DNA of 64,000 nucleotides from Mizuhopecten yessoensis (lineage: Eukaryota): contig NW_018408726.1 in NCBI RefSeq assembly GCF_002113885.1, positions 3,182,642 through 3,246,641 of the forward strand, written 5' to 3'. The position numbers and the translations under genes were made by a program. Positions 21,528 to 64,000 of the stretch are shown here, in pieces. A model generated the notes under the pieces. That model was not told the origin of the DNA, ran no database searches, and was given only the letters and a program-made list of their open reading frames with translations. Position 1 is the first letter of the stretch. Every line of letters starts with the position of its first letter.

Positions 21528-21626
21528 CATATTTAAAAGCTCATTAATCACAAATGCATCATTTAAAAGTAGTTATCGTTCAGGAAACAACGAATGAAAC
21601 AAGGCCTCATTGTCTTAGTAACAACG
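21528..21626 (+). other. P1 peptide gene: putative TATA-like box and non-coding exon 1
   Basis: Donor AACG|GTAAGTAC mirrors P3 AACG|GTGAGTAC. ATGCATCAT..CAGGAAA is shared with the P2/P3/P4 5' regions. Confidence 0.5.
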
Positions 21627-22429
21627 GTAAGTACTTTAATTCAAAACTGATTTTTTTTATCTTTAATTCAATCAAGTACGGTTAATTTATTTTTTAAAAG
21701 ATGAATTTTGTTATTTCTTCAATTTCCACTTTTTGTTTAGGTTTTAAATTCCGATTCTGTTTTAATGTGCTTTGACTATAGTAATTTGTGAGTTCCGGTG
21801 TTTAGCTTGTGTACTGACTTCTAGGTACATGCTGCCATCGATTGCTTACGCTAACGACAGTGTATTCAAAACGGGACACTTTTCCTTCGCTTAAATATTG
21901 ATGTACATAAATGTATTTTATACCATAGCATCAATTCCGAAAATGCTTGTTCATTCTCCATAAAAATATATCATCCACTTCTCTTGCTTATTAAAAGTTG
22001 ATATATCCAGAAAATGGTTCTATAAAACAAACGCAAATAGCCATAAGGTTATGTTTACATGTAAATATATCAGAGTAAAATGGGGTTCTGATTTAACTTC
22101 TCCAAATTAACACTTGTAGTGAACAAAATAAGCCTCCTAAAATTATATCTGAATAGATTGCGTCGCATGGCACGTAACTAAATAACGTTCTGTTTTCATT
22201 ATTTTTTCTTATCTTAAACTGTCTGTGTCACCATGATGAACAGTCAATTAAGCCGATAGACAATTAAATTAAAGTAAAATATCATGCAGTAGAACAAATC
22301 ATACATACAAATCCTCTTTGAGTTGCATGCCAATTTCGTTGGCTGCAGGTTTTGATATTGTTTCGTTTCGGGTAAACTGACGTTATGGTACACTGTAGTT
22401 CATAATTCCAGTCTTGTTTTTGAACGTTG

Positions 22430-24085
22430 ACGTTAGTTTCAGTTCTATTTTTAAACGCTGAAATTAGTTTCATTCCTGTGCCTAAGTGCTAACGCTAGTT
22501 CCAGTTCTGTGCCTGAGTGCTAACGCTAGTTCCAGTTCTGTGTCTGATTGCTAACATTAGTTCCAGTTCTGTGTCTGAGTGCTAACGCTAGTTCCAGTTC
22601 TGTACCTGAGTGCTAACTCTAGTTCCAGTTCTGTGTCTGATTGCTAACATTAGTTCCAGTTCTGTGTCTGAGTGCTAGCATTAGTTCCAGTTCTGTGTCT
22701 GAGTGCTAGCATTAGTTCCAGTTCTGTGTCTGAGTGCTAACGCTAGTTCCAGTTCTGTGCCTAAGTGCTAACGCTAGTTCCAGTTCTGTGTCTGAGTGCT
22801 AGCATTAGTTCCAGTTCTGTGTCTGAGTGCTAACGTTAGTTCCAGTTCTGTACCTGAGTTCTAACGCTAGTTCCAGTTATGTACCTAAGTGCTAACGCTA
22901 GTTCCAGTTCTGTGTCTGAGTGCTAATGCTAGTTCCAGTTATGTACCTGAGTGCTAACGCTAGTTCCAGTTCTGTGCCTAAGTGCTAACGCTAGTTCCAG
23001 TTCTGTGTCTGAGTGCTAATGCTAGTTCCAGTTCTGTGTCTGAGTGCTAACGCTAGTTCCAGTTCTGTACCTGAGTTCTAACGCTAGTTCCAGTTCTGTA
23101 CCTGAGTTCTAACGCTAGTTCCAGTTCTGTACCTGAGTTCTAACGCTAGTTCCAGTTATGTACCTAAGTGCTAACGCTAGTTCCAGTTCTGTGTCTGAGT
23201 GCTAATGCTAGTTCCAGTTATGTACCTGAGTGCTAACGCTAGTTCCAGTTCTGTGCCTAAGTGCTAACGCTAGTTCCAGTTCTGTGTCTGAGTGCTAATG
23301 CTAGTTCCAGTTCTGTGTCTGAGTGCTAACGCTAGTTCCAGTTCTGTATCTGAGTTCTAACGCTAGTTCCAGTTCTGTACCTGGGTTCTAACGCTAGTTC
23401 CAGTTCTGTACCTGAGTTCTAACGCTAGTTCCAGTTCTGTACCTGGGTTCTAACGCTAGTACCAGTTCTGTACCTGAGTGCTAACGCTAGTTCCATTTCT
23501 GTACCTGAGTGCTAACGCTAGTTCTAGTTATGTACCTAAGTGCTAACGCTAGTTCCAGTTCTGTTCCTGAGTTCTAACGCTAGTTCCAGTTCTGTGTCTG
23601 AGTGCTAATGCTAGTTCCAGTTCTGTACCTGAGTGCTAACGCTAGTTCCAGTTCTGTGTCTGAGTGCTAACGCTAGTTCCAGTTCTGTGCCTAAGTGCTA
23701 ATGCTAGTTCCAGTTCTGTACATAAGTGCTAACGCTAGTTCCATTTCTGTACCTGAGTTCTAACGCTAGTTCCAGTTATGTACCTAAGTGCTAACGCTAG
23801 TTCCAGTTCTGTACCTGAGTTCTAACGCTAGATCCAGTTATGTACCTAAGTGCTAACGCTAGCTCCAGTTCTGTGCCTAAGTGCAAACGCTAGTTCCAGT
23901 TCTGTACCTGAGTGCTAACGCTAGTTCCAGTTCTGTGCCTGAGTGCTAACGCTAGCTCCAGTTCTAAACCTAAGTGCTAACGCTAGCTCCAGTTCTAAAC
24001 CTAAGTGCTAACGCTAGTTCCAGTTCTGTGCCTAAGTGCAAACGCTAGTTCCAGTTCTGTGCCTGAGCTCTAACGCTAATTCTAG
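22430..24085. repeat. 31-bp minisatellite (GAGTGCTAACGCTAGTTCCAGTTCTGTGTCT) in P1 intron 1
   Basis: Period 31, about 52 units. Confidence 0.97.
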
Positions 24086-24227
24086 CTGTGTGGTTGTGTA
24101 TTGACGGTTAAGTATTTTAAATTTAGGTTGAGTTTTCTATTTGTCTGCTTAGGATTCGGTGTTAAAAAGTTTCACTTCCGTCTTTTAGTGTTGACGCTCA
24201 CATATATTTCCTACTTCACAGAGTAAA

Positions 24228-24310
24228 ATGCTAAAGGTGGAAGTTGTGTTGTTGATAGTAGCAGTGGCGCTCGTATCAGCACATGCCTACTGGTGCAGGC
24301 GTCCCTTTCG
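24228..24310 (+). CDS. P1 secreted peptide exon 2: MLKVEVVLLIVAVALVSAHA-YWCRRPF
   Basis: Acceptor CTTCACAG (24221) and donor GTAAGT. Hydrophobic signal ending AHA, homologous to P2/P3 exon 2. Confidence 0.8.
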
Positions 24311-25324: not shown

Positions 25325-25505
25325 TACATACGCTTCACTGATCTTTTGTCTGATGGAGGTGACAGTACATACGCTTCACTGATCATTTGTCTGATGGAGG
25401 CGACAGTACATACGCTTCACTGATCATACGCTTCATTGACCATTTGTCTGATGGAGGTGACAGTACATACGCTTCACTGATCATTTGTCTGATGGAGGCG
25501 ACAAT
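25325..25505. repeat. ~41-bp repeat, about 4 copies
   Basis: TACATACGCTTCACTGATCATTTGTCTGATGGAGG(T/C)GACAG. Confidence 0.85.
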
Positions 25506-26156: not shown

Positions 26157-26328
26157 CATCTATCTAGGCCGTGTGACACATATGTAAATGATTCTATGAG
26201 ACGAACAGTTTATAAAACTAGTTGAAACTTTATAGACACCTTTATTATCTATCTAGGCCGTGTGACACATATGTAAATGATTCTATGAGACAAGCAGTTT
26301 ATAAAACTAGTTGAAACTGTATAGACAC
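26157..26328. repeat. ~90-bp tandem duplication
   Basis: ATCTATCTAGGCCGTGTGACACATATG...TATAGACAC occurs twice. Confidence 0.85.
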
Positions 26329-27069: not shown

Positions 27070-27161
27070 CTCCTTGGGTTGGTGTCCCTCCCCACCACCA
27101 TCGTCCATATCGGAGGGGCCCCATACAAGTGAATGATCCTGTAGGATATCTCAACTTCTAA
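27070..27161 (+). CDS. P1 exon 3 (mature peptide; reading frame uncertain)
   Basis: Acceptor TTTTCTAG, donor at 27180. Phase-1 reading is PWVGVPPHHHRPYRRGPIQVNDPVGYLNF*; phase-2 reading is SLGWCPSPPPSSISEGPHTSE*. Confidence 0.65.
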
Positions 27162-27531
27162 AGGAGTAGGATCCAACCTGTATGGTTGTGAGAAAAAGAC
27201 GTAAATCCAAAACCTAAAATTCAATCAATTATTTCGTAAAAGATAATTATTTGAGAGGGCCATGCTGTTCAGTTGTGTGTAGGGCAACCACAGAGTGTCT
27301 GTAGATAGGAGGAAATGTTGCCTTTGTAGGTAGGTGTAACATGGATGGCCATCTAATGCAATGATATTTTGTCAATGCATGTGAAGACTACAAAAATTGT
27401 CAAGATGTATACAAGTATCAATCAGTACATTTAGCTTTTGTATTTTGGATAAATATTACATAATATTATTCCACCTTAATTTTTTCTTTTATGTACGTTC
27501 TATTTGTTTCATACTTTTTTCTGCGTTTCAG

Positions 27532-27640
27532 GTACTGGTTCTAACAGATTCTCCTGATGACCATAACTAACCTGCAGATTCCGTAAAAAATAGAATTCAT
27601 TCAATGTAAACTATTTTCTCTTGTTTTGTAGATAAAGATT
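27532..27640 (+). other. P1 3'UTR exon 4
   Basis: Pyrimidine tract plus TTTCAG acceptor. The sequence aligns by eye with P3 exon 4 (GTACTGGTTCTAACAGA.. vs ATCCTGTTTCTTACAAA..; CAGATTCCGTAAA vs CAGGTTCTGTAAA). Confidence 0.6.
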
Positions 27641-28694: not shown

Positions 28695-30262
28695 TCTACA
28701 GTAATATCACATAGATAGGGGCATGGTGCCTACAGTAATAGGACATAGATAGGGGCAGGGTGCCTACAGTAATAGGACATAGATAGGGGCATGGTGCCTA
28801 CAGTAATAGGACATAGATAGGGGCATGGTGCCTACAGTAATAGGACATAGATAGGGGCATGGTGCCTACAGTAATAGGACATAGATAGGGGCATGGTGCC
28901 TACAGTAATAGGACATAGATAGGGGCATGGTGCCTACAGTAATAGGACATAGATAGGGGCATGGTGCCTACAGTAATAGGACATAGATAGGGGCATGGTG
29001 CCTACAGTAATAGGACATAGATAGGGGCATGGTGCCTACAGTAATAGGACATAGATAGGGGCATGGTGCCTACAGTAATAGGACATAGATAGGGGCATGG
29101 TGCCTACAGTAATAGGACATAGATAGGGGCATGGTGCCTACAGTAATAGGACATAGATAGGGGCATGGTGCCTACAGTAATATGACATAGATAGGGGCAT
29201 GGTGCCTACAGTAATATGACATAGATAGGGGCATGGTGCCTACAGTAATATGACATAGATAGGGGCATGGTGCCTACAGTAATATGACATAGATAGGGGC
29301 ATGGTGCCTACAGTAATATGACATAGATAGGGGCATGGTGCCTACAGTAATATGACATAGATAGGGGCATGGTGCCTATAGTTATATGACATAGATAGGG
29401 TCATGGTGCCTACAGTAATATGACATAGATAGGTGCATGGTGTCTATAGTAATATGACATAGATAGAGGCATGGTGCCTACAGTAATATGACATAGATAA
29501 GGGCATGGTGCCTACAGTAATATGACAAAGATAGGGGCATGGTGTCTATAGTAATATGACATAGATAGGAGTAATATGACATAGATAGGGGCATGGGGTC
29601 TATTGTTATATGACATAGATAGGGGCATGGTGCCTATAGTTATAATATGACATAGATAGGGACATGGTGTCTATAGTAATATGACATAGATAGGGGCATG
29701 GTGTCTACAGTAATATGACATAGATAGGGACATGGTGCCTATAGTAATATAACATAGATAGGGGCATGGTGCCTACAGTAATATGACATAGATAGTGGCA
29801 TGGTGTCTACAGTAATATGACATAGATAGTGACATGGTGCCTATAGTAATATAACATAGATAGGGGCATGGTGCCTACATTAATATGACATAGATAGTGG
29901 CATGGTGTCTACAGTAATATGACATAGATAGGGGCATGGGGCCTACAGTAATATGACAAAGATAGGGGCATGGAGTCTATAGTAATATGACATAGATAGG
30001 GGCATGGTGTCTACATTAATATGACATAGATAGGGACATGGTGCCTATAGTGACATAGATAGGGGCATGGTGCCTACAGTTATATGACATAGATAGGGGC
30101 ATGGTGCCTACAGCAATAGGACATAGATAGGGGCATGGTGCCTACAGCAATAGGACATAGATAGGGGCATGGTGCCTACAGTAATAGGACATAGATAGGG
30201 GCATGGCGCCTACAGTAATATGACATAGATAGGGGCATGGTGCCTACAGTAATATGACATTT
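28695..30262. repeat. 34-bp minisatellite (CCTACAGTAATA(G/T)GACATAGATAGGGGCATGGTG)
   Basis: Period 34, about 46 units. Confidence 0.97.
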
Positions 30263-39384: not shown

Positions 39385-39850
39385 TGTGGGGTCTACTATA
39401 GAGGGGATACAACAGACGCGACTACAATAAGGTGGTCTACATCAGGGGGTACAATGTACAATATAGAAGGTGTATTATAGGTGGTCTACAACAGGGGGTA
39501 CAAAATAGAAGGTCTATTAAAGGCCGTCTACAACAGGGGGTACACAAAAGAAGGTGTATTATAGGGGGTCTTCAACAGGGGGTACACAATAGAAGGTGTA
39601 TTATAGGGGGTCTACAACAGGGGTACAAAATAGAAGGTCTAGTATAGGGGGTCTACAACAGAGGGTACACATATGTCTACAATAGGGGGTCTTCAACAGG
39701 GGTACACAATAGAAGGTGTATTATAGGGGGTCTACAACAGGGGTACAAAATAGAAGGTCTAGTATAGGGGGTCTACAACAGAGGGTACACATATGTATAC
39801 AATAGGGGGTCTTCAATAGGAGGTATATTGAAAGGGATCTACAATAGATG
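39385..39850. repeat. G-rich compound repeat (GGGGGTCTACAACAGGGGTACACAATAGAAGG...), related to the 17.9-18.8 kb array
   Basis: Shared GGGGTCTACA/GGTACAC motifs and an internal ~120-bp duplication. Confidence 0.8.
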
Positions 39851-42800: not shown

Positions 42801-43539
42801 TCTTCGTTAGCCCTGATGGCACTCAAAATGCTATTACATTGTACATAAATTATAAAGAAATTAGTATGTATAATTGTGACATATTTGACAAGTCCTAATG
42901 GCATTTATCAAACGCGACATTATTCGTTAGCAAGGGAATTCATGTACTGAAAGGAAGCTTCGATCATTTCTTCATCCGAGAGAAAATTAAATCCAATTTT
43001 GTGTTATAAAAATCGAATTTGAAGATCAAACAAAGAACCAAATCTATAAATATAGGAAAACACAAAATAGAACAGTGTTTTTCGATTTTATTCCTTTTCT
43101 TTTACAACCTGCATGTAGAAAAAAGAAAAAAAGACCAAAGTATAAATAAAACGACCAATGTTTATTAGCATTTTGTAGTAGTTTATCAACAAATAATCAC
43201 AAAGAAACTTGAAAAAACATTGACTATTTGTGTAAGTCGAAATTAAAGAAAAAAAAAGTTCCTTTAATTACTTACTTTTATATTTCCTAACTTGATGTAG
43301 ACTGAAACATTACAACGTGAAATATTGCTATATGATTAGAGTCGATTGACAAATCCGATAAGTGACATTTAAGAGGGGTTTGTTAGGCGACATCTAAAAG
43401 GGGTTTGTTTAATGATACACAAAAGGGTCTTCTTTAATGACATCTAAAGAGGATGTGCGACGTTACTGTCTGAAGCAGTTTTCTCAAGAGTAGAAATACT
43501 AATTAATCTAATTGATAACCGTGCATCTGATGCTTGCTC

Positions 43540-46110
43540 GTTACCATATGTCTGTTGTTTGCTCAGTACCGTTTGTATGTTGTTTGCTCTGTACCGTATG
43601 TCTGTTGTTAGCTTGCTACCGTATGTCTGTTGCATACTCACTATACCGTATGTCTGTTTTTTACTCACTATACCGTATGTCTGTTGTTTGCTTACTTCCG
43701 TATGTCTGTTGTTAACTTACTACCTTATGTCTGTTGTTAGCTTACTACCGTTTGTCTGTTGTCAACTTACTACCGTTTGTCTGTTGTCAACTTACTACCG
43801 TATGTCTGTTGTTAGCTTGCTACCGTATGTCTGTTGCATACTCACTATACCGTATGTCTGTTGTTTGCTTACTACCGTAGTATGTCTGTTGATAGCTTAC
43901 TACCGTATGTCTGTTGTATACTCACTATACCGTATGTCTGTTGTTTGCTTACTACCGTATGCCAGTTATTTGCTTACTTCCGTATGTCTGTTGTAACCTT
44001 ACTACCGTATGTCTGTTGTAAGCTTACTACCGTATGTCTGTTGTTTGATCACTACCGTATGTCTGTTGTTAGCTTACTACCGTATGTCTGTTGCATACTC
44101 ACTATACCGTATGTCTGTTGTATACTCACTATACCGTATGTCTGTTGTTTGCTTACTTCCGTATGTCTGTTGTTTGCTTACTTCCGTATGTCTGTTGTTA
44201 GCTTACTTCCGTATGTCTGTTGTTAACTTACTACCTTATGTCTGTTGTTAGCTTACTACCGTATGTCTGTTGTATACTCACTATACCGTATGTCTGTTGT
44301 TTACTCACTATGCCGTATGTCAGTTGTTTGCTTATTTCCGTATGTCTGTTGTTAGCTTAGTACCGTATGTCTGTTGTAAGCTTACTACCGTATGTCTGTT
44401 GTTTGATCACTACCGTATGTCTGTTGTTATCTTACTACCGTATGTCTGTTGCATACTCACTATACCGTATGTCTGTTGTATACTCACTATACCGTATGTC
44501 TGTTGTTTACTCACTATACCGTATGTCTGTTGTTTACTCACTATGCCGTATGTCTGTTGTTTGCTTATTTCCGTATGTCTGTTGACAGCTTAGTACCGTA
44601 TGTCTGTTGACAGCTTACTACCGTATGTCTGTTGTATACTCACTATACTGTATGTCTGTTGTTTACTCACTATGCCGTATGTCTGTTGTTTGCTTATTTC
44701 CGTATGTCTGTTGACAGCTTAGTACCGTATGTCTGTTGATAGCTTACTACCGTATGTCTGTTGTATACTCACTATACTGTATGTCTGTTGTTAGCTTACT
44801 ACCGTTTGTCTGTTGTCAACTTACTTCTGTATGTCTGTTGTTTGCTTACTTCCGTATGTCTGTTGTTAGCTTATTACCGTATGTCTGTTGTAAGCTTACT
44901 ACCGTATGCCTGTTGTTAGCTTACTTCCGTATGTCTGTTGTATACTCACTATACCGTATGTCTGTTGTTTGATCACTACCGTATGCCAGTTGTTAGCTTA
45001 CTACCGTATGTCTGTTGTATACTCACTATACCGTATGTCTGTTGTTTGCTTACTACCGTATGTCAGTTGTTTGCTTACTTCCGTATGTCTGTTGTTAACT
45101 TACTACCGTATGTCAGTTGTTTGCTTACTACCGTATGTCTGTTGTTAACTTACTACCGTTTGTCTGTTGTTTGCTTATTTCCGTATGTCTGTTGTTGGCT
45201 TACTACCGTATGTCTGTTGTTAACTTACTACCGTATGTCTGTTGTTTGCTTACTTCCGTATGTCTGTTGTTAACTTACTTTCGTATGTCTGTTGTATACT
45301 CACTATACCGTATGTCTGTTGTTAGCTTACTACCGTATGTCTGTTGTTTGCTTACTTCCGTATGTCTGTTGTATACTCAATATACCGTATGTCTGTTGTT
45401 AGCTTACTACCGTTTGTCAGTTGTTTGCTTACTTCCGTATGTCTGTTGTTAGCTTACTACCGTATGTCTGTTGTTCGCTTACTACCGTATGTCTGTTGTC
45501 AGCTTACTACCGTTTGTCTGTTGTTAGCTTACTACCGTTTGTTGTATGCTCACTACCGTATGTCTGTTGTTAGCTTACTATCGTTTGCTGTTGCATGCTC
45601 GCTATCGTACGTCTGTTGTTAGCTTACTACCGTATGTCTGTTGCATCCTCCGTACCGTATGTCTGTTGTTAGCTTACAAATCGTTTGTCTGTTGTTAACC
45701 TACTACTGTATGTCTGTTGTTTGCTTACTACCGTTTGTCTGTTGTTAGCTTACTATCGTTTGTCTGTTGTTAACCTACTACCGTATGTCTGTTGTTAACT
45801 TACTACCGTATGTCTGTTGTTAACCTACTACCGTATGTCTGTTGTTTGCTTACTACCGTTGGTCTGTTGTTTGCTTACTACCGTATGTCTGTTGTTTGCT
45901 TACTACCGTATGTCTGTTGGTTGCTTACTACCGTATGTCTGTTGTTTGCTTACTATCGTAGGTCTGTTGTTTGCTTACTATCGTTTGTCTGTTGTTAGCT
46001 TGCTACCGTTTGTTGTTGCTTGCTCACTACCTTTTCTGTTGTTAGCTGACAACCGTATGTCTGTTATTAGCTTACTACCGTTTGTCTCTTGTATGCTGAT
46101 TATTTTATGT
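43540..46110. repeat. 25/27-bp minisatellite (CTTACTACCGTATGTCTGTTGTTAG / CTCACTATACCGTATGTCTGTTGTATA) in P2 intron 3
   Basis: About 100 units; source of the many Cys/Val/Leu ORFs at 43.5-46.1 kb. Confidence 0.97.
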
Positions 46111-46529
46111 CTGTTTTGTAACATTTGTTAATGTCCGCTGTGTTTTGTTATGTCATGTGTTTTAGGTGCTCCGTACTGTATGCCTGTTTTATTTTGCTTA
46201 GTAACGTGAGTGTGATATGCTCATGTTTATATGGCTGTTTTGTGCTTATAACTATAAACAGCTGCAAGCATGCCCTCTTTTTCTTAGTACATTAGTTATG
46301 TTGTATGCTAAATAAAGTTGTAAAATATAACTATGGTATGCTCATTTCCATAGTTCTTGCATAAGCTGGGTGATTATTGCCTAATGCACACATTACATTT
46401 TTACAATGTGTGATCCGTATGTCTGATAAAGTGCCTTAGAGTAGATTTGCGAATTATAAAGGGCGTTATACAAATGTTGTAAAAACATTTTTTTATTATT
46501 ATTTACGAAAAAGAAATGGTATATTCTTC

Positions 46530-47730: not shown

Positions 47731-48223
47731 GAATTACAGACGCAATTCAAATTTAAAGAAATTAAGAAATGCATGGTACGGGTCTGTTATGTTAGGTATG
47801 TAATACACCTAAGAGTCACGTCGTCACAATGTCTTTGATCCAATGTGGCTTTACCAAAGAAATAATGTTTGAACATTTTTGAGCATTTATGTCTTAATAT
47901 ATTCTGACCGATTTCCTATAAAAGTTGTTAACCGATACAGTATGCCAAATAAATAGTACTGCACAGTACAGTTGTTTCACCCTACTAGGACTAAACGACG
48001 ATGTTAGCGGCCAAATAGTTGGACACTTACATTGGTCTCAAACTTCTGTCGAAACAGCATAAGAGCGAAAATATCCTTGATATATAAATTTCATAATAAA
48101 AAGGGTACTGATTAACATCAACACGCGAACATCACTAAAAGTCCAGGAGACCTAATACTTTGATTCACAAAAGAAAGCGATATTGATAAGAGTTTTGTTT
48201 CTGTTGAAAACGTATCTAGTTAC

Positions 48224-48335
48224 TCAAAGTTGCCGCCTGCATAAACGGGTCGTGTGACTCAAAGTACCAGTCTGCGTGAACTGTGACGAAAGCCAATGCC
48301 AGTGCCAACAACACTACTACCACTCTCAGCATCAT
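48224..48335 (-). CDS. P2 secreted peptide exon 2: MMLRVVVVLLALALAFVTVHA-DWYFESHDPFMQAATL (gene probably truncated)
   Basis: Acceptor TTGTATAG and donor GTAACT; 112 nt, phase 1, same length as P3 exon 2. Signal peptide is 19/21 identical to P3. Confidence 0.85.
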
Positions 48336-48859
48336 TCTCCTCCTATACAAGTAGAAATGTATTAATCAGCGTCAGCAAATCAGAGTATGATTTTAATGTA
48401 GAACAAACATAGAACCATCAATATTGTCAAGCTATCAGGACTGGATCGAAAATCAAAATCGATGAAGAAAATAATAATCACAATTACGAAAAAGATATAC
48501 GTAAACATAATATCTCACTAGGAAAGAAACAAATAGACAAAAAGAGACCGCAGCATCAGGCAACCAATGACAAAATCTGAACTGATATTTCGCTTTCTTT
48601 CTTACACAGTTTAAAACAATTTCGAACATGTCGTTAAACAGTAGACCTGTGTAGTTTAATTTGATTTTTAGTATCAATCGATAGTTCTCAATTCTAGTGC
48701 AGTACATACATGCATGTCATATTTATGATAGCACAGCTATGTATTTCGTATTTCTAATTAAAGAATTGTACTACTTGAAATGTAATATATAGTTCTTAAT
48801 CAAAACTATAGTAGGCTACATATAACATGTGCTTCATAATTCTCAATGATAGAACTTAC

Positions 48860-48926
48860 CCTTACTGTAACCAGTGCGTCTTAGACAACGACTCTAAATG
48901 AACGCAAGGGGATGTCCTACTTATAA
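48860..48926 (-). promoter_or_regulatory. P2 TATA box (48921-48926) and non-coding exon 1
   Basis: Minus strand CACCTTATAAGTAGG..GTTCATTTAGAGTCG..AAGG|GTAAGT aligns with P3 CACCTTATAAATACG..GTTCATTTAGTATCG..AACG|GTGAGT. Confidence 0.7.
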
Positions 48927-50451
48927 GGTGTTGTCTGATCCTTATTTCCTGAAAATGATGAATGTGAGATCGTAAAATGCTAGAAAAATGATATCTGTCT
49001 GAATTTCCTTGATGATGACTCATTTAATACTATGATTAAGCTGTTATCTTTCTTTTCCGAGAGTTTTTAAACGTGAATGTATATAGACGTACGGTCGCCT
49101 GCTAGCTTTGCACTAGAGACTAATTCCTTTAATTCCATTGGTAGAGCGGAGGACGTCTGAGCCGGGGTCGATAATTCGATCACCAGACGGAACACACTAC
49201 TCTTTTACTGTTTCAAATGGTGCCCGTTGCCCTCCCTGTTATGGCAGGTTCAACACGTATGAAATAAGGGATAGAATGGTGTCGCAGGTTTAATTCTACT
49301 TATGAGCATGGTCGCCGTCTAGCTTTTCTTTGAAAAGAATATACCTTTAACATATTCTGTAAAACAGCGGACTGGAAAGCTGTCAATGATCCTTGGTCAA
49401 AGCACACTACTCTCTTTCATGTATCATTCAAATAACTTCGGTAGCCTTTTGTGTTGACCTTGTAATGTTTACACTCTTATTGCCATTGATTATGTTTTAC
49501 AATTTATCTACAGAATAGTCTGCATGTATTTGTTATGGCGTTATCTGTAAATCACAATGTGCTTTAATATAGTAGGGTATTTTAAATTTAGTCTTAAACT
49601 GCGTTTTATAATTGAAAGTAGCGACTAGTCTCGAGTGCATACGACTCAGAAATGAATAACAAACAATGAAATAAAATAAAAATAAGTCTGTTCAGACCTT
49701 TAAGTATTCCCTTGTTCGTTCGTACGGGAGCTGTTTAGCGGCAGAATGGATTGAATGACCCTCGTTAAATGTTTCACCTCTTGAGTATTTGCATAGTAAT
49801 ATGTCATTACATTTTACGTTTGCATACCATACTGATGCAATGCAAATAACTGAATATGCAAATAATATATTATGTATCAAAAACATAACATATCTGTATG
49901 TGATTAACACATCTATCACGTGATGCTTTATTTACAATTATCGTTTACGTTATACGGCTCATGTCTATTTCTTATATGCGTCAATCATCGACTTTAATTT
50001 TCTAGGTGTCTAAAATTTAAAACCTCTAATCGTGAAAACAGAGGACATTTTTTTTTTATAATCACACTAAATACACTTAGAAGCGTCTTAGATGTGCTGT
50101 GTCCTTCAAATATGTTCTTTATGAATATGATGAACTAAAACTGAATATACATACGATCGTTCAAGTGCCTGTAAGATACACGGAATATTTATACTTTGAT
50201 TAAAGGCTACGGCGCTGCCATAGCGTCTCGTTGTCCGCTTGTGGAGATATCAATGAGATTGACCGATGAGTCAAGATGGTGATTTGTGTTTTAATAGAGA
50301 AAATACAATTTCACGGGGAAAACATTCTGAACACATTTTCGTTCAATTAAATATGGCAAAATGAAAACAAAATTGTCAAGGAATACCCTTTTTCGTGTTC
50401 GTTTAGTGACTATAACGGTTTCCTCTTTTTTGCTCTGTATAATTTATGAAA

Positions 50452-55310: not shown

Positions 55311-55479
55311 ATAAGGAATTATAAGGCGACCGTAGTCCTACATACATTTAAAAACGTAGAAAACAGACTCATCATGATATTCATTGATTTACCGCCAAAA
55401 GAATAGACGTATACTGTTTTTCTAGCATTTTATTATCGCACATGCATCATCGTCAGGAAAAACGGATCAGATAGCACCT

Positions 55480-55540
55480 TATAAATACGAAATCCCATTG
55501 TGTTCATTTAGTATCGGTGTCACAGACGGACTCTTTAACG
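55480..55540 (+). promoter_or_regulatory. P3 TATA box (TATAAAT) and non-coding exon 1
   Basis: TATAAAT at 55480-55486 and donor GTGAGT at 55541; conserved with P2 and P4. Confidence 0.72.
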
Positions 55541-56148
55541 GTGAGTACTATCATTGAGATTTACGAAGTAAATGCTAACATACTTTAGCTGAATTGAGAA
55601 CTATATATTACATTTCAATAATAATGGTCATTCATATTTTGGTATAAAGTAGAACATGTATATTAAAAAAACCAATGAGTAATACGTAGCTATGCACCGA
55701 CATATTGTACAAAGTTTTAAACATCTTTATTTTGTTGATTTCCGAGAGAGAAACATGTTACTGTTTCAATGATTTTCTGCAGAATGAATATAATGCTAAT
55801 ATGCAGCAAAAGAGCAAAACCTAGAAGTGTAAATTGGAGATACGATAGCTATCACGCTCCACAGATTGTATACAGCATTATATGTGCGGTTTATATATTT
55901 TGTTTACGTATTTCACTTTTCCAAAAGTGCTTATTATTTACTTTATCGTTTTGACAATAGTAAGATATTATGTTTATGTATATATCTTTTTCCTATTTGT
56001 GATTATTATTTTCTTTACTGATTTTGATTTTAAATCCAGTACGGATAGCTTGACAATAGTGATGGTTCTATGTTTGTTCTACATTAAAATCCTACTCTGA
56101 TTTGCTGACGCTGATTAATACATTTCTACTTTGTTGTATAGAAGGAGA

Positions 56149-56260
56149 ATGATGCTGAGAGTGGTAGTTGTGTTGTTAGCCATAACCTTGGCTTTCGTCA
56201 CAGTTCACGCAACCTGGAACTATGATACACACGGCCCGATTCATTCAGGCGGCACTTTGA
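56149..56260 (+). CDS. P3 secreted peptide exon 2: MMLRVVVVLLAITLAFVTVHA-TWNYDTHGPIHSGGTL
   Basis: Acceptor TTGTATAG and donor GTAAGT; classic signal peptide; phase 1. Confidence 0.88.
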
Positions 56261-57178
56261 GTAAGTAGATACGTTTTCAACAGAAACAAAAATCGTCAAA
56301 TATTGTTTTCTTTTGTACATCGAAGTACCAGGTCTCCACGACATTTTAGTGATGTTCGTGATTTGATGTTAACCAGTTCCCCTCTTAATTTTGTTTACAT
56401 ATCAAAGAGATTTACACATATCAAATTCTCTTTAATCAGTACTTTAGACCAATTTGAATGTGCACCTATTTGGCCACTAGTACCACAGGTGATTCTCAGA
56501 AGGATTAAACAGCTCTATGGTGCAATGTAGTTCGTTTTTGGCATACCCTTTTAGAACAAATGTTATTGGACATTGGTCAAACTGTAAGACATTAATGCTC
56601 AAATATGTTTCGAAGATGACTTGGGTAAAGCCGCATTAAATCACGGGCATTGTGACGTAACGATTACGATCTGTTGCCTAACACAGAGGTGTGGTACATA
56701 CGTCACATCACAGAATCGTCCCCATCTATTTATGTATTTCTTCATGCGTTTCGCATTATTTTAATGTGGACTGCGTCTGTTATGTACGACGTACTACTAC
56801 GATGTTATGGAAAAGTAAGTTGTTTCTACTTTCGCATTATGATACCAGACCACCAACACGAATACAAAAAAAGGTCAACATTTGACTAAGGGGTAAAGGT
56901 TATAACAAAACCTTCAACAGTACATGATCCTACATACTGAAAGTTTGGCAATTACACAGTCCAGTGTGTTGCTGTATGCCAAGATACCGCCTAAATCACG
57001 ATTGACATGTTGACGGGAAGAGGTTGGGAATGCTTCACTACCAACGTTTCAGACAGTACATCACATATCATGTCAGAGGGGATAAGAAAGAAACACATAA
57101 AACATATTATCTGTGTACTGTTATATTATAGCTTTGAAATAAAAAAAAATATTACTGAATCCTATGTAATCAATACAG

Positions 57179-57285
57179 ATCATTGGCCCGGAAGGCACTA
57201 CTACCGTCGTGGATATTACGGACACAGAATACGTCTTCATTACAGAAATCGGTATAGGAGAAGGAGGTTCCCACGTGGTGGATAA
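57179..57285 (+). CDS. P3 exon 3: (N)HWPGRHYYRRGYYGHRIRLHYRNRYRRRRFPRGG*; precursor 72 aa
   Basis: Acceptor AATACAG in phase with exon 2. Donor GG|GTAAGT lies 20 nt after the stop. Confidence 0.85.
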
Positions 57286-58568
57286 TCACACAGCACACTC
57301 TCCGGGTAAGTTCCTCTCTGCGTCATAAAGAATCAAAACATGAATCCATATCATATCCCTTTTGTAAATAGTAGTAATAATATATCACATTTGTAAAGTG
57401 CCTTTTATTATTTGCAAGGCGCATTATCAGATATACGGTACTGAGCACATCACAGTCATGTTGTAATGTGTTCATTAGGCAATAACCGCACAACAGACAT
57501 ATGCTACAGACCACACCATGGCATGTACTACTGAACACGCATTAGACATAAGTAGCTAATATACAACAAACATACTGTAAGAACACAGAGTGGGCATAAT
57601 TACAGTTGTTTGTAATACAACATAAACATAGTACTGAACATACAACATACACACTGTACTGAGGTTACAACAGACATACGTTAATGAGCATACGCCATAT
57701 AAGAGATAGTGAGCATATAACAGACAAACGGTACTGAGCACATTTGGCAATTATCTTACACGTCTAACTTATCACTTAACTAGTATATCTACTCTTTTGA
57801 TTGTAACGTCACATATCCATTTTAATTATCATTCAAGAAGATCCTTCTGTATACCATTAAACAAAGCCCTCCTTAATGTCACCTATTAGGTTTTTTATAC
57901 TACACTAATCATTTATTAATATTTCAAGTTGTAATCTTACAGTCTTCGTCAAGTAAGGAAATCAAATGGCTTGCATTTCATAATCTGTTTTTTTTCTATT
58001 TCCTCCTTTGGTTTAAAACTAAAACAGTTGTGATATCGCACAACGTATCAAAATAACCGCACGAAGTGTGCGCTACAGATTAATCAATCAGTCGCCTCGT
58101 TGTGCGATAAAACGTGCACGTATGTGTGATATGGTAAGATCGGTTGTTTGATGTTACGGAATGAAAAAAACCCAAAAAGATCGAGAGAAATAAGATACAT
58201 CGTATACGTATTAAACACAACAGATATTCGGTAAGAAATATTTAGTAATGTGAAGACAGCAAGCATATAGTAATGCGAAGACAGCAAACATATAGTAATG
58301 TGAAGACAGCAAGCATATAGTAATGTGCACACAGCAATGATATGGTAATGAGCACACAACAGAGAAGTAGTAATGTGCACACAGCCGACATACGTTAACA
58401 CGTTATCTTCAATATACTTCTGGGATTACACAAATTGTCAACGCACTGGAGCTAACACAAGTAGTCCATATTTACTGTGAGTTTTGCGACTTAATGTCGA
58501 TTAACTAGTACAGAATGCTACTGAACATTGAGGGTTTTATTCATACTCACTTTGTGTTATATTTTCAG

Positions 58569-58690
58569 ATCCTGTTTCTTACAAAATATTTGGATAACCA
58601 ACCACTGACAGGTTCTGTAAAGATTAGGAAAGTCATCGAAGAACATTGTTCTTTTTTGTGTTTTATATAAATAAAAACACAGTCAACTGC
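58569..58690 (+). other. P3 3'UTR exon 4 with AATAAA (58670-58675)
   Basis: TTTTCAG acceptor; homologous to P1 exon 4. Confidence 0.65.
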
Positions 58691-60965
58691 TATTTAGTTT
58701 TCTTTCTTTGTCTGGCCTTCAAACCCAATTTGTTTAAAAAAAATATGAGACATTACTAACTCTTTTAATTGAAATTAAAATAGAATAGAAATTATCTAAA
58801 CTTTATTTTTTAACATGCATTTCTCCGCGAATCCAATAAATAATCAAAAGTGTGATGAAAAAATATCAGGGATAACATGCCAAATAAGTTACAATTGTAT
58901 ACATTAACGCCGTTATTGTACATTGTACCAAGACATTGAGCGTCACCAGGGGTAATGCAGGAAGAAGTACGTTAACGGCTTATTTCAGACGTGGCATTAG
59001 GATTCACAGGCAAAAAAAGTTTAAATTATCATACCTAAAAACGTCTTAAGAATCAATGTATCAACATAGTATCGCTGTACGTAATAATTCAACAATTTAC
59101 ACGCCAATGGCAAAGGTTAGGGAACACGTTTGAGTTTGAAATTATCCCGCCGATTTACGACCGTATAAAAAAAACCCACATAAATCCTTGTAAAGTTTAC
59201 CGTCTATGCTTTCATTATCAGACGATCGTTCAGGTACTTCAGGAAAATATACATGTATATTGAAACAAATGATACAGAAATTAGAATAAGAAGTTATCTA
59301 CAACCCTATACTAATTACATATTTGTACCATTAATTACAATGAGGGATGTTTCCAAACGTACATACAGTATGTCATATAAATAGAGACAGGATATTTAAT
59401 GGTTTCTTGCTATCCCGTTGTTAAAGACGTCCTTCTGTCTGCTTGTAAATATATCACAGGGATTAATCGGTAAGTCAAGATGACGATTTCTACTGTTATT
59501 AAGGTAATACAAATTCATAAGGAAAGTTTTTAATCATATTTTTAATACAAATGCTCATGTATTTGTGGAAGTCATTTAAATTGTTCTCTCACAGCATAGT
59601 CTAGATACTTATCGAAAATGTATGTTACCCCACTATAGGTAACTAGAGTTTAGACGAATGTTGCCGTACAACATATTAACATATATACACGTATATACAA
59701 TGAATGGAGAATTAAACCTAGCTTTACATATAACTGTAAAGATTACGAAATATTAATGGAATAGTTAATGGCTACGTCACCGCCAAAGCTTATCGCTGTC
59801 TACTTGATAACATATCACTGAGCTTCGCCAATAATTCAAGGCGACGATTGGTGTTTTTATAGAGAAACAAACATTTCATGAGAAAAACTCCGACCTATTT
59901 TTGTCACATTTAAAATATCACAAAACGAATACACAAAATACTCATCATCGATTCTTTTTTCTCGTAAATCCTAGAATATCTTTGCTTTGTACAATGTATT
60001 AAAAGGTCACGTGTCCTACTCTAAGCTGATCATACATCCTGACAATAGCAGGATTCACTTTAGTTATTAAGCCCCATTAATGAGTTATTCAATATTATTT
60101 ATATCATATATCTACACACAACTGAGGGTTTTACGTATTTATTTCTAACCCTCTCTGATACGATTTGTGATATTCTTTCTAAATGTTTGCAAATTTACAA
60201 GAAAAGCATACAAGTCCTGTATATATTACCTCTGCAGATATATTACATAATGAATGGAAACGAACTATGGTGTACAGGTTACAAGTTCCACACGCATAGG
60301 TCAATCGAAGTTAACTAAATGAAATAGGAAAGAGAGTTGTGTACCTTAACCATGGATCAAGGCCAGCTTTCCGGTCCGTTGCTTTGCAGATAGTGTTTAA
60401 GGGAAATTCTTGCAAACGTGAAGCTAGAAGGCGACCATCTTTCTTTCTTTCGTTTTAGTCTACATCGTTGTAAGCGTTTTAGCTTTTGAAGATGTCTTGA
60501 TTGAATTTCGTTTACTATTTCATAATGTTCATCCGGTTACGCATATAGCATACATTGATAAAAAGTCATAATCATATAAGCAATTCAAACCTATCACACT
60601 TCCCCCTCCCCCCTCTTGTTATAAATTTAAAATGTGTTCATCCCGAACACCACACATTCCTAGTCATCACAAGGAGGGCCACGAACACCATTTGAAACAG
60701 GAAAAAGCGTAGTGTGCTCCGTTGGTGATCAAATAAGCGACCCCAAGCTCCCAAGTCGGTCGCTCCACCAATGGGATTAAAGGGAATATTTCTAGTGCAA
60801 AGCTAGAATGCGACCGTCATCCTACATACATCTAATAAACTTTTTAAGAACAATAAAAAAAAGATTCATTATTTTATATTTAATATTTTTTCACTAAAAA
60901 TGTAGGCGTATATTGTTTTTACTAGCATTTTATTATCACATGCATCATCTGAAGGAAAGACGGAT

Positions 60966-63141
60966 TGATTGATTGATTGATTGATTGATGGATAGGTTTT
61001 ACGTCCGCTTCACTACCGAGTATTTCGGTTATCCAGCAGACGGAGAACAGAAAGGAAAATGAGTAGAAGGGATGAAGTATGGAGTAAAAGAGTAGAGGAG
61101 TGGGATAGGTTAGAGAAGGGGCCTTCTATCCTATATATATTAACTGTATAAGTTTAGTTTTTGTAAGACGGCTCCTAATGCCTAATAATGCCTTAACCTA
61201 ACACTCATCGTACAGCATCACCAAGTCAGTGCCGGAAGTGAGGTACTGTGCCGCCTCCAGCCACACCAGCCCCTGCCTATTCTATGAATTTGGCTTGTAT
61301 ATAAGATTTGGAAGTCCATCTAAATGTCTTAATAAAGAGACCCTAGTTCTAACGGCCTAAAATTTTGGATAAAGTTTTCACTATCCTCTGTGTCGGCGTT
61401 TACGCGCCTACTCTTTTTCGAAAAAACAAGAGGGATTTTGTTCGTGCGAGATTGGACAGTTCTCACACGGGTCTCCATTTATAGTCCCATCCGACGGACT
61501 GTATATTAGTGGTAAGTGTCATGCATGTGCTGTTTTTTTGTTGTCCGTTCCATGTACTCCTCTCCTCATTCATCACTGAGAATAAACCTGACTATACTTG
61601 TACCAATGACATCTTTCTTATAAACCTCGACTTGCCTTTCATTTATTTCTGCTCATCGTTCGTATGGGTTGGTTTGTTAGTTGTGTGAAGATATTTAGTG
61701 GTTGTTGTGTTTACTTTTACGTGTAATTAATCATGTATACACATATATATATATAGTATTTTACTCGATTAGACATAAGATTGCTGTGGGGTGGGAGACT
61801 CGTCCATTTCTTAAAAACGGAACATCCCGCACGTGGTCAGAACACATACGTTGCAGCTTTCTTACATCAACCGAAAGTGAAATGTTTTTAGGTTTTGAAT
61901 AATTAATTAGAGTTTTTTGATTTGAATATTAATTAAGTTTGTTTATTAGTTTGAGTGATTGGATATTGTTGTTATTACACTATTCGCTGTGTCAGATACA
62001 CAGATATTGATTATTAGTTCATTATTCGATTATCCCGTTATTCCTACCTAACTAATAGGTCCATATAGCACCGTTGGCCTCGAAGCTCCCTCCTTTACCA
62101 CCGCTAACCTTGTAGGGTTTTACGCCGAATGAGCAAGAGGGCCTATTTTATGGGTCGTATTATACAGTTTATAGTGGTAATACAGTTCTATCCTAATGTA
62201 TATCCACCGTTTAAGCTTTGTACAGTCGAAAAACGGTTGCACATCGCTCTCCAGCGGTACATATATATTTATTCATGTGTATGTGTACATGTATACACAC
62301 ATATATATATATAATATTATACTCGATTAGACATAAGATTGCTGTGGGGTGGAAGACTCGTCCATTTTTTAAAAACGGAACATCCCGCACGTGGTCAGAA
62401 CACATACGTTGCAGCTTTCTTACATCAACCGAGTGTGTAATCATAGTTTTTTTGTTGTTATTAACTTTAATGATTTCATTTTTGTGTTTTTTGCTTGTGT
62501 TTGCTTTTGATTTTTCCTTAGTATCGGGTGCTGGTCGTTTCATCTTGATTTTGTGCCAGGTGGTGTTTATTTTATAGTACGTTTGATTATTTCTTTCCTT
62601 GTGAGGCTTCTATTTGTTTATTTTAGAATCGGGTGCCGGTGGTTTTTTTTATTATTAATTTTTTTAAATGGCTTTGTTGTCCAGGTGGTGGTGTTTTTAT
62701 TGTGATTTATAGATTTTGTTATTTTGTTATTTTAATACTTATTAGTTGATTTCTGTAATTTGCCGCTGGTTTTATTCTGATGGATATGTATATGTTTTGT
62801 TTACTTGGACATTATTTTCCTGTCTGTATAGGTTTGCTTATACACAAGTTTGGTCTATATAATGGTTGATATGTTTTAAGTACTTACATTCTATCTTAGT
62901 CATCATGATGAAGAAGACCTTATACTTTGGGAGCAGTTTTATACAGCGTCTGGGGAGATATGTCGGAGACAGGGATGGAAGTGCGAGTTATCATGGACGG
63001 GGAGGCCCTAGACTTTGTCAGGTTACGGCAGAGATGCGTCGGCGTGTGATCCAGGAGAGGGCTGACGTCGTCATCATGCAGCTAGGGGCAAATGACATCG
63101 CACCTGATCGGCTCCCCGGGGATATTGTTGATGACATGGAC
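60966..63141 (-). mobile_element. composite retroposon with 8-bp TSD, (AATC)n tail, Nin-like SINE domain, internal direct repeats and an antisense SGNH fragment
   Basis: TSD AGACGGAT at 60958-60965 and 63142-63149; (GATT)n at 60963-60989. Minus strand 61390-61500 reads CCGTCGGATGGGACTATAAATGGAGACCCGTGT..GCACG..CGAAAAAGAGTAGG. Confidence 0.75.
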
Positions 63142-63156
63142 AGACGGATCAGATAA
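62905..63156 (+). CDS. truncated SGNH/GDSL-type esterase domain (retroelement-associated)
   Basis: FGSSFIQRL (block I), GRGG (block II), VVIMQLGANDI (block III). Cut off at the TSD before block V. Confidence 0.7.
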   Translation: MMKKTLYFGSSFIQRLGRYVGDRDGSASYHGRGGPRLCQVTAEMRRRVIQERADVVIMQLGANDIAPDRLPGDIVDDMDRRIR

Positions 63157-64000
63157 CACCATATTAATACGAAATCCCATCGTTCTAATTTAGTATCGTT
63201 GAGTACTATCATCCGATTTATATTTAAGTAAAATACACGTGTGCTTTTCACCGACATATTGTACAAAGTTTTAAACTGTGTAAGACAGAAAGCAGACTTT
63301 CATTTCAGATTTTGTCCTTGTTTATTAATACTGCGGTCGATTTTCATTTTATTTTTGTTACCTAACGAGTGAGAAACATGCTGCTGTTTCAAAGATTTTC
63401 TACAGAATAAATATAATGCTAACATGTAACAAAAGAGCAAAACTCAGAAGTGTAAATTAAAGATACGATAGATATCACGCTCCAGAGATTGTATACAGCA
63501 TTTTATGGGTGATTTATATATCATGTTTACGTATCTCTCTTTTTTCCAAATTGTGATTATTCAATTAAATCCTGATAGCTAAACAATAGTGATGACTGTG
63601 ACGAAAGCCAAGGCTTTGGCTATGGAAATGTATTGATCTGTTATCTTTCTTTTCCGGGAGTTTTTAAACGTGAATGTATATAGGATTACGGTCGCCTGCT
63701 AGCTTTGAACTAGGGACCAATTCCTATAATTCCATTGCAGGTCGGTGGGATAGGTCGAACCTGGGAAAAAAAGTTACTATGTTATCAAACTCTTCTGATT
63801 TCAACTCATCAATGTCTCTAGTATGCTAGAAAAAAAGACCCGAAAGATTCCCTTTGGGGAAAACAATGAGGCCATTTTAAACTTTGACCTATTTTTCACC
63901 TTTTTTCGCCAAAAATGAAGAACGAGAACATATCGGTTAGATGAAAAAAAATTCAGATTTTTGATATTTTCTTTGTTACAAGAGTGCTGCAAATATGTTA

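Follow-up and report, generated by a model that had tools for sequence, protein, structure and literature searches.

Small secreted peptides have been described from several animal systems. The mytilins and myticins of mussels are cysteine-rich antimicrobial peptides, stabilised by disulfides and made with an anionic C-terminal propeptide. The histatins are short, disordered, vertebrate salivary peptides that are rich in His, Tyr and basic residues, dominated by Lys and His, and encoded by a small tandem gene family. Mussel foot protein 3 (mfp-3), which lacks Cys and is rich in Arg, Tyr, Gly and Trp, is a secreted protein of about 5-7 kDa that occurs in many variants. The myticalins of mussels have a pI above 11, contain more than 10% Arg, frequently undergo Gly-directed amidation and share the signal consensus MKGxxLLLLTIxxALCMIxECEG, and no myticalin-like sequence was found when scallop genomes were searched for one (PMC5577615).

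The locus described here lies in a window of 64,000 nucleotides from the Yesso scallop, Mizuhopecten yessoensis. A six-frame motif scan of the window returned exactly three exons that run from Met to HA-x-W, P1 (24228-24293, +), P2 (48335-48267, -) and P3 (56149-56217, +), and all three have an AG acceptor immediately 5' and a GT donor 3'. The signal peptides of P1 and P3 are 55% identical over 22 aa (BLASTP, E 5e-7). P2 and P3, which together form one large inverted repeat, are 79% identical over 714 nt and 73% identical over another 275 nt, and P3 matches the relic P4 at 84% identity over 214 nt and in another 64 nt. The first-pass annotation had reported extensive intron homology among P2, P3 and P4, and these alignments bear it out; promoter and intron homology are common to the three. 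It had also counted four paralogous genes. The paralogy stands and the count does not, since two further copies (P5 and P6) lie past the end of the window and an additional relic lies at 60804-60975. The features are as follows.

21528..21626 (+): P1 TATA-like boxes (21530, 21561) and putative non-coding exon 1, which ends at 21626 and is followed by a GTAAGTAC donor
22465..24082 (unstranded): 31-nt minisatellite, 52 copies, within P1 intron 1
24222..24310 (+): P1 exon 2, with ATG at 24228, a 22-aa signal peptide ending HA-Y-W, 5 further codons and a phase-2 donor
27070..27136 (+): candidate for the mature exon of P1, read in phase over 22 codons to a TGA stop
27386..27636 (+): P1 stretch matching the last part of P3 intron 3 and the putative 3'UTR exon, whose start the aligned acceptor puts near 27532
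43282..46522 (-): P2 3' remains, with intron-3 homology at 46374-46522 and 43282-43643
43542-46115: 25-nt satellite, about 102 copies, between the P2 intron-3 homology blocks
47822..48223 (-): P2 intron 2, homologous to P3, the homology ending at 47822
48224..48342 (-): P2 exon 2, with an intact 37-codon frame, a signal peptide ending HA-D-W and a donor weakened to GTAACT
48860..49049 (-): P2 promoter module with a TATAAGTA box and exon 1, which ends at 48860 and is followed by GTAAGT
55480..55540 (+): P3 TATAAATA box (55480-55487) and putative non-coding exon 1, which ends at 55540 and is followed by GTGAGT
56142..56260 (+): P3 exon 2, with ATG at 56149, a signal peptide, a spacer of ~16-17 aa and a phase-1 donor (56260/56261, RNA-confirmed)
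57179..57305 (+): P3 exon 3, with an RNA-confirmed acceptor at 57179, encoding a 34-aa Cys-free Arg/Tyr/His/Gly peptide that ends Gly-Gly-stop (TAA 57283-57285)
58569..58695 (+): P3 putative 3'UTR exon 4, with AATAAA at 58670-58675, homologous in P1 and P5
60804-60975 (+): promoter-flank relic matching P3 55320-55467, in which a TGAT microsatellite ends the homology just before the TATA position
63138..63625 (+): P4, with the TATA box degraded to TATTAATA, exon 1 truncated, the donor deleted and intron-1 homology to 63600
65.5-67.8 kb (window-equivalent), about 2 kb past the window end: P5, an intact copy
about 72.4-75.2 kb (window-equivalent), ~9.5 kb past the window end: P6, a divergent copy

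The copies are paralogs and are restricted to this cluster. Each module has just 4-7 matches in the 988-Mb genome, all of them within the cluster or on short unplaced, haplotig-like contigs that are 92-99% identical to it and on which mosaic alleles are seen. No homologue was found among 1.84 billion protein representatives, in word-indexed searches, in Pfam or in the ESM Atlas, and a profile of the signal exon recovered no myticalin among the 1.84 billion representatives. No named family fits these genes, which are absent from the existing annotation, in keeping with the first-pass proposal of a lineage-specific family that could not be assigned. Taken together, the data support a tandemly duplicated, clustered, scallop-restricted family of short secreted-peptide genes that includes relic copies.

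The 5' module is the part that the copies share. P1, P2, P3 and P6 can be aligned over a TATA box, the short exon 1 and its GTRAGTA donor, which is deleted in P4. The P1 module aligns with those of P2, P3, P4 and P6, the P2 module is 77% identical to that of P3, and the P3 box and exon 1 are conserved in P2, P4, P1 and P6. This conservation among paralogs suggests that exon 1 is a genuine non-coding exon. No NF-kB-like sites occur within 600 nt 5' of any copy. By eye, the signal peptides of the family have a basic n-region and end in V-H-A or S-A-H-A ahead of a conserved Trp; that of P3 has the n-region MMLR, a 13-residue hydrophobic core and V-H-A at -3 to -1.

At least one copy of the family is spliced and expressed. 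A 440-nt RNA contig of depth about 5 from run X1, which was taken as RNA by guess (the read runs carry codes, not tissues), joins 56260 to 57179 with GT..AG ends and proves the P3-type splice from exon 2 to exon 3. The contig comes from that run only; runs X2 and X4 yielded nothing and X24 (polyA RNA) yielded 2 reads. It starts 32 nt 5' of the exon-2 acceptor and runs on past the exon-3 donor, a consensus GGTAAGT that follows the stop codon after 20 nt of 3'UTR. Since a second contig (58384-58589) continues across the exon-4 acceptor, splicing of exon 4 is unsupported, and it is conservation among paralogs that points to a separate 3'UTR exon. Thus, of the complete four-exon plan proposed at first pass for P1 and P3, the exon 2-3 joint of P3 is now documented in RNA, while exons 1 and 4 remain putative on the strength of their conservation. 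The P3-type precursor is ~72 aa long and comprises the signal peptide, the spacer and the 34-aa cationic segment.

P1 and P6 are older paralogs with the same 5' module as the rest of the cluster. The P1 signal exon is supported by its match to P3, and it has no second copy in the genome. Left unspliced, its frame closes after 28 codons. The mature exon that the first-pass annotation had assigned to P1 is reduced to the candidate at 27070-27136, picked by an acceptor and frame scan, which would add a second Cys to the one in exon 2. Further downstream, sensitive blastn aligned 27386-27636 with P3 at 61% identity over 269 nt (E 4e-8). P2 retains exons 1 and 2 and intron homology, as had been claimed, along with the promoter module; its intron 2 matches that of P3. 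A mature exon could not be identified in the interval 47822-46522, and the satellite in its 3' remains has grown out of the short arrays in P3 intron 3. Between P2 and P3, pN/pS is 0.2 for the signal part, which argues for selection on the signal peptide, and 1.18 for the spacer. The promoter, intron 1 and exon-2 fragment previously attributed to P4 are all present, the fragment being 25 nt long (63601-63625) and inverted. The body of intact P5 lies ~2.3 kb downstream of P4, outside the window, and what remains of P4 may have been displaced from that copy, as its 5' module, rather than being a free-standing relic.

The mature segment of 34-35 aa contains 12 Arg, 6 Tyr, 4-5 His, no Cys and no acidic residue, which gives a pI of 11.87. 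Hydrophobic residues are scarce, so the peptide is not a classical amphipathic helix. Exon 3 is known in four versions (P3, P5, C58601 and the variant in the expressed contig), and in all of them the frame is open and indels are in multiples of three. All 4/4 versions also have an RRRR run, and in each the last codon ahead of the stop is Gly, despite three different tails. The mature regions had been described as hypervariable. This is not borne out by the copies whose mature exon is known: P3, P5 and C58601 are about 74-90% identical with pN/pS of about 0.3-0.5, and only the tail after RRRR, of which the four versions each have their own length and sequence, is hypervariable. P3 and P5 diverge by only 4-12%; they differ chiefly in their C-terminal tails, and their pN/pS of about 0.5 gives no sign of diversifying selection.

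These features suggest a pathway for the gene product. The genes share a module of TATA promoter, short putative non-coding exon 1 and signal-peptide exon ending HA-x-W, and in the P3/P5 type the signal exon is joined in phase 1 to a single exon for a Cys-free cationic peptide. Cleavage after V-H-A is predicted to release a peptide of about 50 aa with a net charge of about +11 and a pI of about 11.6. The C-terminal Gly, a potential amide donor of the kind found in secreted amidated precursors, is predicted to be spent on C-terminal amidation in the secretory pathway, and the conserved RRRR run may also be cut. The peptide may then act as a linear cationic host-defence peptide in the mode of the mussel myticalins and the vertebrate histatins. 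A scallop-restricted tandem cluster that encodes a processed, amidated, cationic peptide with a host-defence (antimicrobial-type) role is the explanation we consider most likely, at about even odds. Against it count the absence of NF-kB-like sites, the scarcity of hydrophobic residues, the lack of a sign of diversifying selection and a composition that would suit mfp-3 as well. A more ambitious version is tentative: scallops would here have their first antimicrobial peptide family of the linear, Cys-free and cationic kind, one that resembles myticalins and histatins by convergence. Its promoter, exon 1 and signal exon would form a conserved cassette that is combined with unrelated mature exons (Arg/Tyr/His in P3 and P5, possibly a Cys-loop in P1, another in P6), and haplotypes would vary through gene conversion and copy gain and loss.

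It is conceivable, though rather unlikely, that the product is instead an adhesive or structural peptide of the mfp-3 type, its Tyr converted to DOPA and engaged in cation-pi or metal cross-linking. It would be made either by the foot glands of juveniles that form byssus or by the mantle, there as shell or ligament matrix. Its composition (18% Tyr, 35% Arg, with Gly, His and Trp, no Cys and a pI above 11) suits such a role, as do its numerous allelic and paralogous variants, a property of mfp-3 as well. The strictly kept terminal Gly, however, points to amidation, a feature of peptide hormones and antimicrobial peptides, and we know of no amidated foot protein. Repeat structure is absent, and adult Yesso scallops are free-living. 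That Tyr-rich proteins are main components of scallop byssus speaks for such a role, but those reported are of 20-29 kDa against about 6 kDa here (PMC9168380). The same terminal Gly and the RRRR run, found in all versions of a small precursor with a signal peptide and a TATA promoter, would also suit a precursor of a neuropeptide, hormone or pheromone that is cut by convertases at RR and RRRR to yield a short amidated C-terminal ligand for a receptor. We regard this as distinctly unlikely, as variation is greatest in the piece that follows RRRR whereas the ligand is normally the conserved part, recent tandem duplication, relics and mosaic alleles are unusual for neuropeptide genes, and no homologue from other animals was found in the protein libraries.

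That the locus is young or decaying and functionless, weakly transcribed and with frames open only through recent duplication, is unlikely. The one spliced contig is matched in depth by unspliced and intergenic contigs; P2, P4 and the 60.8-kb piece are decayed copies and clearly dead; and the low P3-P5 divergence makes frame retention a weak test. Yet the much older P1 and P6 have lost neither the signal peptide with its HA-x-W end nor their splice sites and promoter module, and the in-frame exon-3 indels, the Gly kept over different tails and the constrained signal peptide speak against mere decay. An exon carried by a transposon or derived from a repeat, rather than a host gene family, is largely refuted and scarcely credible. 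Reverse-transcriptase and Tc3-like transposase fragments do lie between the copies, minisatellites occupy several introns and P2 and P3 form their inverted repeat, but the repeat unit lacks a transposon protein domain, is equipped with promoter, splice sites and polyadenylation signal, and shows none of the dispersed high copy number of such elements. Its confinement to the cluster and to small haplotig-like contigs indicates that it is not a transposon.

Scallops are important in aquaculture and suffer from Vibrio and herpesvirus disease, yet only a few of their antimicrobial peptides are known to be gene-encoded products. If the host-defence reading is true, small and easily synthesised amidated Arg/Tyr/His peptides would be candidates for mucosal or haemocyte defence, and the relics and mosaic alleles of the cluster would make it a compact model of the birth and death of such families; should the peptides prove to be adhesive primers, wet-adhesion research would have an interest in them. 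Annotation based on ORFs does not see these genes, nor, apparently, does annotation from protein databases, and the case therefore shows what standard pipelines miss.

With the histatins the scallop family has no sequence relationship, and it is dominated by Arg. The likeness to mfp-3, for which amidation is not known to us, is drawn from composition, size and variants and not from sequence alignment. The first-pass annotation had likened the genes to those of the mytilins and myticins. Both kinds have small secreted precursors whose signal peptide is conserved, and in both the paralogs are clustered and divided into several short exons. The analogy fails because those peptides are Cys-rich and P3 and P5 are Cys-free and have no C-terminal extension; membership is rejected, as the mature exons of P3, P5 and C58601 contain no Cys and so no cysteine array. 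The Cys-free myticalins are the closer analogue. With 0 Cys, 35% Arg and a pI of 11.87, the scallop peptide has the composition used to recognise myticalins (Cys-free, pI above 11, >10% Arg). Membership of that family is nevertheless rejected on the signal consensus, the exon layout and the restriction of myticalins to Mytiloida. The signals are unrelated (MKG..LLLLT in myticalins, MMLRVVVVLL...HA-x-W here); myticalins have signal and mature peptide in one exon (exon 2 of 3), whereas the scallop cationic peptide has its own; and in myticalins a Lys-Arg site precedes an anionic extension of 35-75 aa with a phase-1 intron, whereas in P3 the stop comes right after Gly and acidic residues are absent. 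Like the myticalins and modiocalins (PMC5577615, PMC12294457), the scallop products are predicted to be secreted, with a Cys-free, Arg/Tyr-rich mature region of pI above 11 and Gly-directed C-terminal amidation (predicted only, in the scallop family). The genes resemble them in having an exon 1 of 5'UTR only (putative here), an ATG that opens exon 2 and a phase-1 coding intron, and in forming a taxonomically restricted multigene cluster that includes pseudogenes and varies strongly between individuals. The relics, mosaic alleles and TATA promoters of the scallop cluster would likewise fit the birth-and-death pattern of the myticalins (PMC5577615, PMC12294457).

The peptide genes on this stretch of Mizuhopecten yessoensis DNA represent a family of small, predicted-secreted cationic peptides that is real, unannotated and at least partly expressed, and that is apparently scallop-specific. 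The first-pass annotation of the locus was largely right, although it was incomplete and overstated the exon plan and the hypervariability of the genes. The window has a GC content of about 35% and contains numerous minisatellites and retroelement fragments. A six-frame motif scan of the 64 kb for a methionine followed by the HA-x-W ending of the signal-peptide exon (exon 2) returned exactly three matches, confirming the three related signal exons that had been proposed:

24228-24293, + strand: signal exon of P1
48335-48267, - strand: signal exon of P2
56149-56217, + strand: signal exon of P3

A looser pattern (a hydrophobic run, then [HQ][AS]-x-W), applied to 197 kb of the contig, recovered the same three, two more just past the window and no unrelated sequence, so the motif is far from a chance occurrence. 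Each of the three exons has an AG acceptor 6-7 nt 5' of the ATG and a GT donor, and the signal peptides of P1 and P3 are 55% identical (E = 5e-7). Comparison of the window with itself also bore out the intron and promoter homology described among P2, P3 and the relic P4. P2 and P3 are 79% identical across the 714 nt that cover exon 2 and its adjoining introns and 73% identical across 275 nt of promoter, P3 and P4 share 84% over 214 nt plus a further 64 nt, and colinear remnants of P3 intron 3 were found downstream of P2.

The gene model for P3 is as follows:

TATAAATA box at 55480, a short stretch about 30 nt later and a GTGAGT donor after 55540, + strand: putative exon 1, from sequence
56142-56260, + strand: exon 2, signal peptide and 16-aa spacer, ending in phase 1
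57179 (start), with Gly-Gly-stop at 57285, + strand: exon 3, joint codon and 34 residues
58569 (start), with AATAAA at 58670, + strand: putative 3'UTR exon 4, from sequence and paralog homology

A check for spliced RNA recovered the joint from 56260 to 57179, with GT..AG ends, in a single 440-nt contig of X1, a public run labelled RNA by guess. The exon 2-3 splice is thereby demonstrated, and with it a reading frame of about 72 aa. Cys and acidic residues are absent from the 34 residues of exon 3, which include 12 Arg, 6 Tyr, 4 His and 5 Gly. The four-exon plan is thus borne out in RNA at its centre, but exons 1 and 4 rest on conservation. In the 440-nt contig the first 32 nt precede the exon-2 acceptor and the last 159 nt lie beyond the consensus donor after 57305, and a second contig (58384-58589) passes through the acceptor of putative exon 4; because these contigs extend through their splice sites, the outer exons are without support in the RNA examined. 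The exon-1 module, including its donor, can be aligned in P1, P2, P3 and P6, the donor region of exon 3 is nearly invariant between copies, and the acceptor and body of exon 4 align among P3, P5 and the distant P1 (P5 and P6 are copies past the end of the window). This paralog conservation makes exons 1 and 4 of P3 probable but unproven. Since X1 contigs of like depth also occur on intergenic DNA, unspliced background in this run is a real possibility. X1 contigs of depth 2-5 at 59351-59614 and 60277-60400 lie outside every gene model; their source may be a transposon, a further transcript or background from genomic DNA, which weakens inference from unspliced X1 contigs. At P3, runs X2 and X4 placed no reads, and the polyA RNA run X24 placed two, one of which lies only partly on exon 2, continues into unlike sequence and is not countable; it may be a hint of an upstream exon.

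The cluster extends further than the four members first described, since P5 and P6 lie beyond the window and an extra promoter-flank relic lies within it. The less complete features of the window are:

27070-27136, + strand: candidate mature exon of P1, the best of the scan candidates and a guess
60804-60975: promoter-flank relic, identified by homology
63138-63625, + strand: P4, with a degraded TATA, exon 1 with its donor deleted, intron-1 homology and an inverted 25-nt exon-2 fragment

P1 had been credited with the full exon plan. Its 5' module is in place, 52 copies of a 31-nt minisatellite unit lie in intron 1, exon 2 ends in phase 2 and there is homology to exon 4, but an acceptor and frame scan for its mature exon gave several candidates and nothing firmer. 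In P2 the promoter and exon 1 survive, and exon 2 is still open, with a weakened donor; the interval in which a mature exon would be expected yielded none, and what was once intron 3 is now an expanded array of 25-nt units, 2.6 kb long. P2 is most likely a pseudogene. The parts ascribed to P4 are present, but P4 may not be a relic in its own right: the 2 kb assembled upstream of P5 lacks a promoter module, and the P5 homology starts at a single-N gap (contig position 3248075), so that P4 may instead belong to P5 as its displaced 5' end. An element of about 106 nt, 90% identical between copies, adjoins the P2 promoter (49035-49140) and P4 (63632-63737), recurs at L009:357-474 (L009 is C5247:1-10000, part of an unplaced contig) and may mark duplication breakpoints. 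Between P4 and P5, at L007:2780-2900 (window-equivalent about 64.8 kb), an ATG-started open stretch ends at a GTATGT donor and resembles an exon that belongs to a transposon or to some unrelated gene.

The assembly searched comprises 988 Mb in 82,659 contigs, in which the window is C5399:3182642-3246641. P5, at window-equivalent 65.5-67.8 kb, is a full P3-like gene with 87% identity to P3 over 2.4 kb; its exons 2 and 3 are intact, about nine positions and a 3-nt insertion distinguish its peptide from that of P3, and the end is again Gly-stop. P6, at about 72.4-75.2 kb, is a divergent copy whose signal peptide ends SAHA-N-W and whose promoter/exon-1 region and intron 3 are colinear with those of P3; a search of its region for a mature exon gave nothing convincing. 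The haplotig-like contigs, namely the small unplaced C63331, C58601 and C56880 and the 16-kb C5247, match parts of the cluster at 92-99% identity and combine P3-like with P5-like segments as mosaics, and the spliced RNA contig is a further mosaic. Such mosaics fit a picture of alternative haplotypes in which gene conversion or unequal exchange has occurred. C5247 is reverse-colinear with 57775-64105 at 92-96%. The copy of the peptide gene on it resembles P5 on the 5' side and P3 further downstream, with exon 3 inside an assembly gap; C5247 probably represents an alternative haplotype that carries a recombinant gene.

Divergence between P3 and P5 is 3% in the signal peptide, 4-11% in the introns and 12% in the coding part of exon 3. 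The pN/pS ratio is 0.2 for the P2-P3 signal peptide and 0.52 for P3-P5 across codons 1-30 of exon 3. Judged from these sequence comparisons, the signal peptide is under constraint. Positive selection on the peptide exon is not demonstrable: selection tests are underpowered at about 30 codons, and a pN/pS of 0.3-0.5 gives no evidence of diversifying selection. The mature exon, earlier called hypervariable, is truly variable only in the 5-7 residues after an invariant RRRR run, where indels come in multiples of three and the final residue is always Gly.

Protein queries were single-exon translations, each extended in frame into the intron for the word-indexed library, and the joined exon 2 and 3 translation was used for length, composition and pI computation alone. 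Exon 2 of P3, exon 2 of P6 and exon 3 of P3 gave no candidates in that library of 5.8 billion clusters. A profile of five signal exons found no relative among 1.84 billion representatives; its only two matches, both unrelated repeat proteins, were rejected as homologues. A single-exon query of the ESM Atlas gave no usable match, Pfam gave nothing exceeding noise, and no scallop family of this kind was found in the literature. The earlier statement that the genes cannot be assigned to a named family therefore stands across these searches. Each module has only 4-7 matches genome-wide, all in the cluster or on haplotig-like contigs, which excludes the transposon origin that had been raised as an alternative. 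In the promoters of P1, P2 and P3, a CAGGAAA (ETS-like) element precedes the TATA and is the sole conserved motif besides it, which is weak evidence; a promoter scan found no NF-kB-like site.

Other repeats surround the genes. A large satellite at 8062-12000, built of 19-nt units that form higher-order blocks and strongly skewed in both GC and AT, yields spurious minus-strand open frames of 376 and 433 aa. A 29-nt tandem array at 3871-5600 holds a 278-aa open frame whose sub-domain Pfam matches, GH97_C and DUF7476, look like low-complexity artefacts. Between P1 and P2 lie a 46-copy 34-nt minisatellite (28696-30260) and a 42/120-nt array (39456-39825), to which a diffuse array at 17941-18864 is related. 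Transposon debris also lies between the peptide genes, at 15953-16726(-), 36646-37077(+) and 35103-35510(-), in the form of reverse-transcriptase fragments and a helix-turn-helix fragment of a Tc3-type transposase.

What, then, might the peptides do? For the P3 type, the mRNA is spliced and encodes a signal-peptide-like N-terminus and a highly cationic, Cys-free product. The signal peptide would be cleaved after V-H-A, the peptide would be secreted via the regulated pathway, the conserved terminal Gly would direct amidation, and the product would act as a linear cationic host-defence peptide. We give this reading an even chance and prefer it because the peptide's composition and amidation signal, together with the TATA promoters and a cluster of birth-and-death type, match it best. 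An adhesive or matrix peptide resembling mussel foot protein 3 (mfp-3) is unlikely, as the known scallop Tyr-rich byssal proteins are much larger (PMC9168380). The locus may instead be young, transcribed and functionless, yet the old paralogs P1 and P6 retain all 5' features, and we consider this improbable. Least probable among these alternatives is a convertase-processed signalling precursor, in which the presumed ligand would be the least conserved part.

If host defence is the role, an analogy had been drawn with mytilin/myticin-type genes. Mytilins and myticins are cysteine-rich, and for that reason they fit the P3-type peptide less well than the myticalins, the Cys-free linear cationic antimicrobial peptides of mussels. 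The family should be useful for mollusc immunity and peptide discovery, even though the kind of system is already well known and not conceptually surprising. Membership of the myticalins was rejected: the scallop signal peptide is unlike theirs, the mature peptide is on its own exon, and it has neither a dibasic site nor an anionic C-terminal extension. The authors describing myticalins found none in scallops (PMC5577615). The mussel myticalin family is nevertheless the closest described system (PMC5577615, PMC12294457). Its members are secreted, Cys-free, Arg/Tyr-rich and often Gly-amidated, with a pI above 11, as are the scallop peptides, for which secretion and amidation are predicted; both families share a 5'UTR-only exon 1 (putative here) and a coding intron in phase 1, along with pseudogenes and presence/absence variation.
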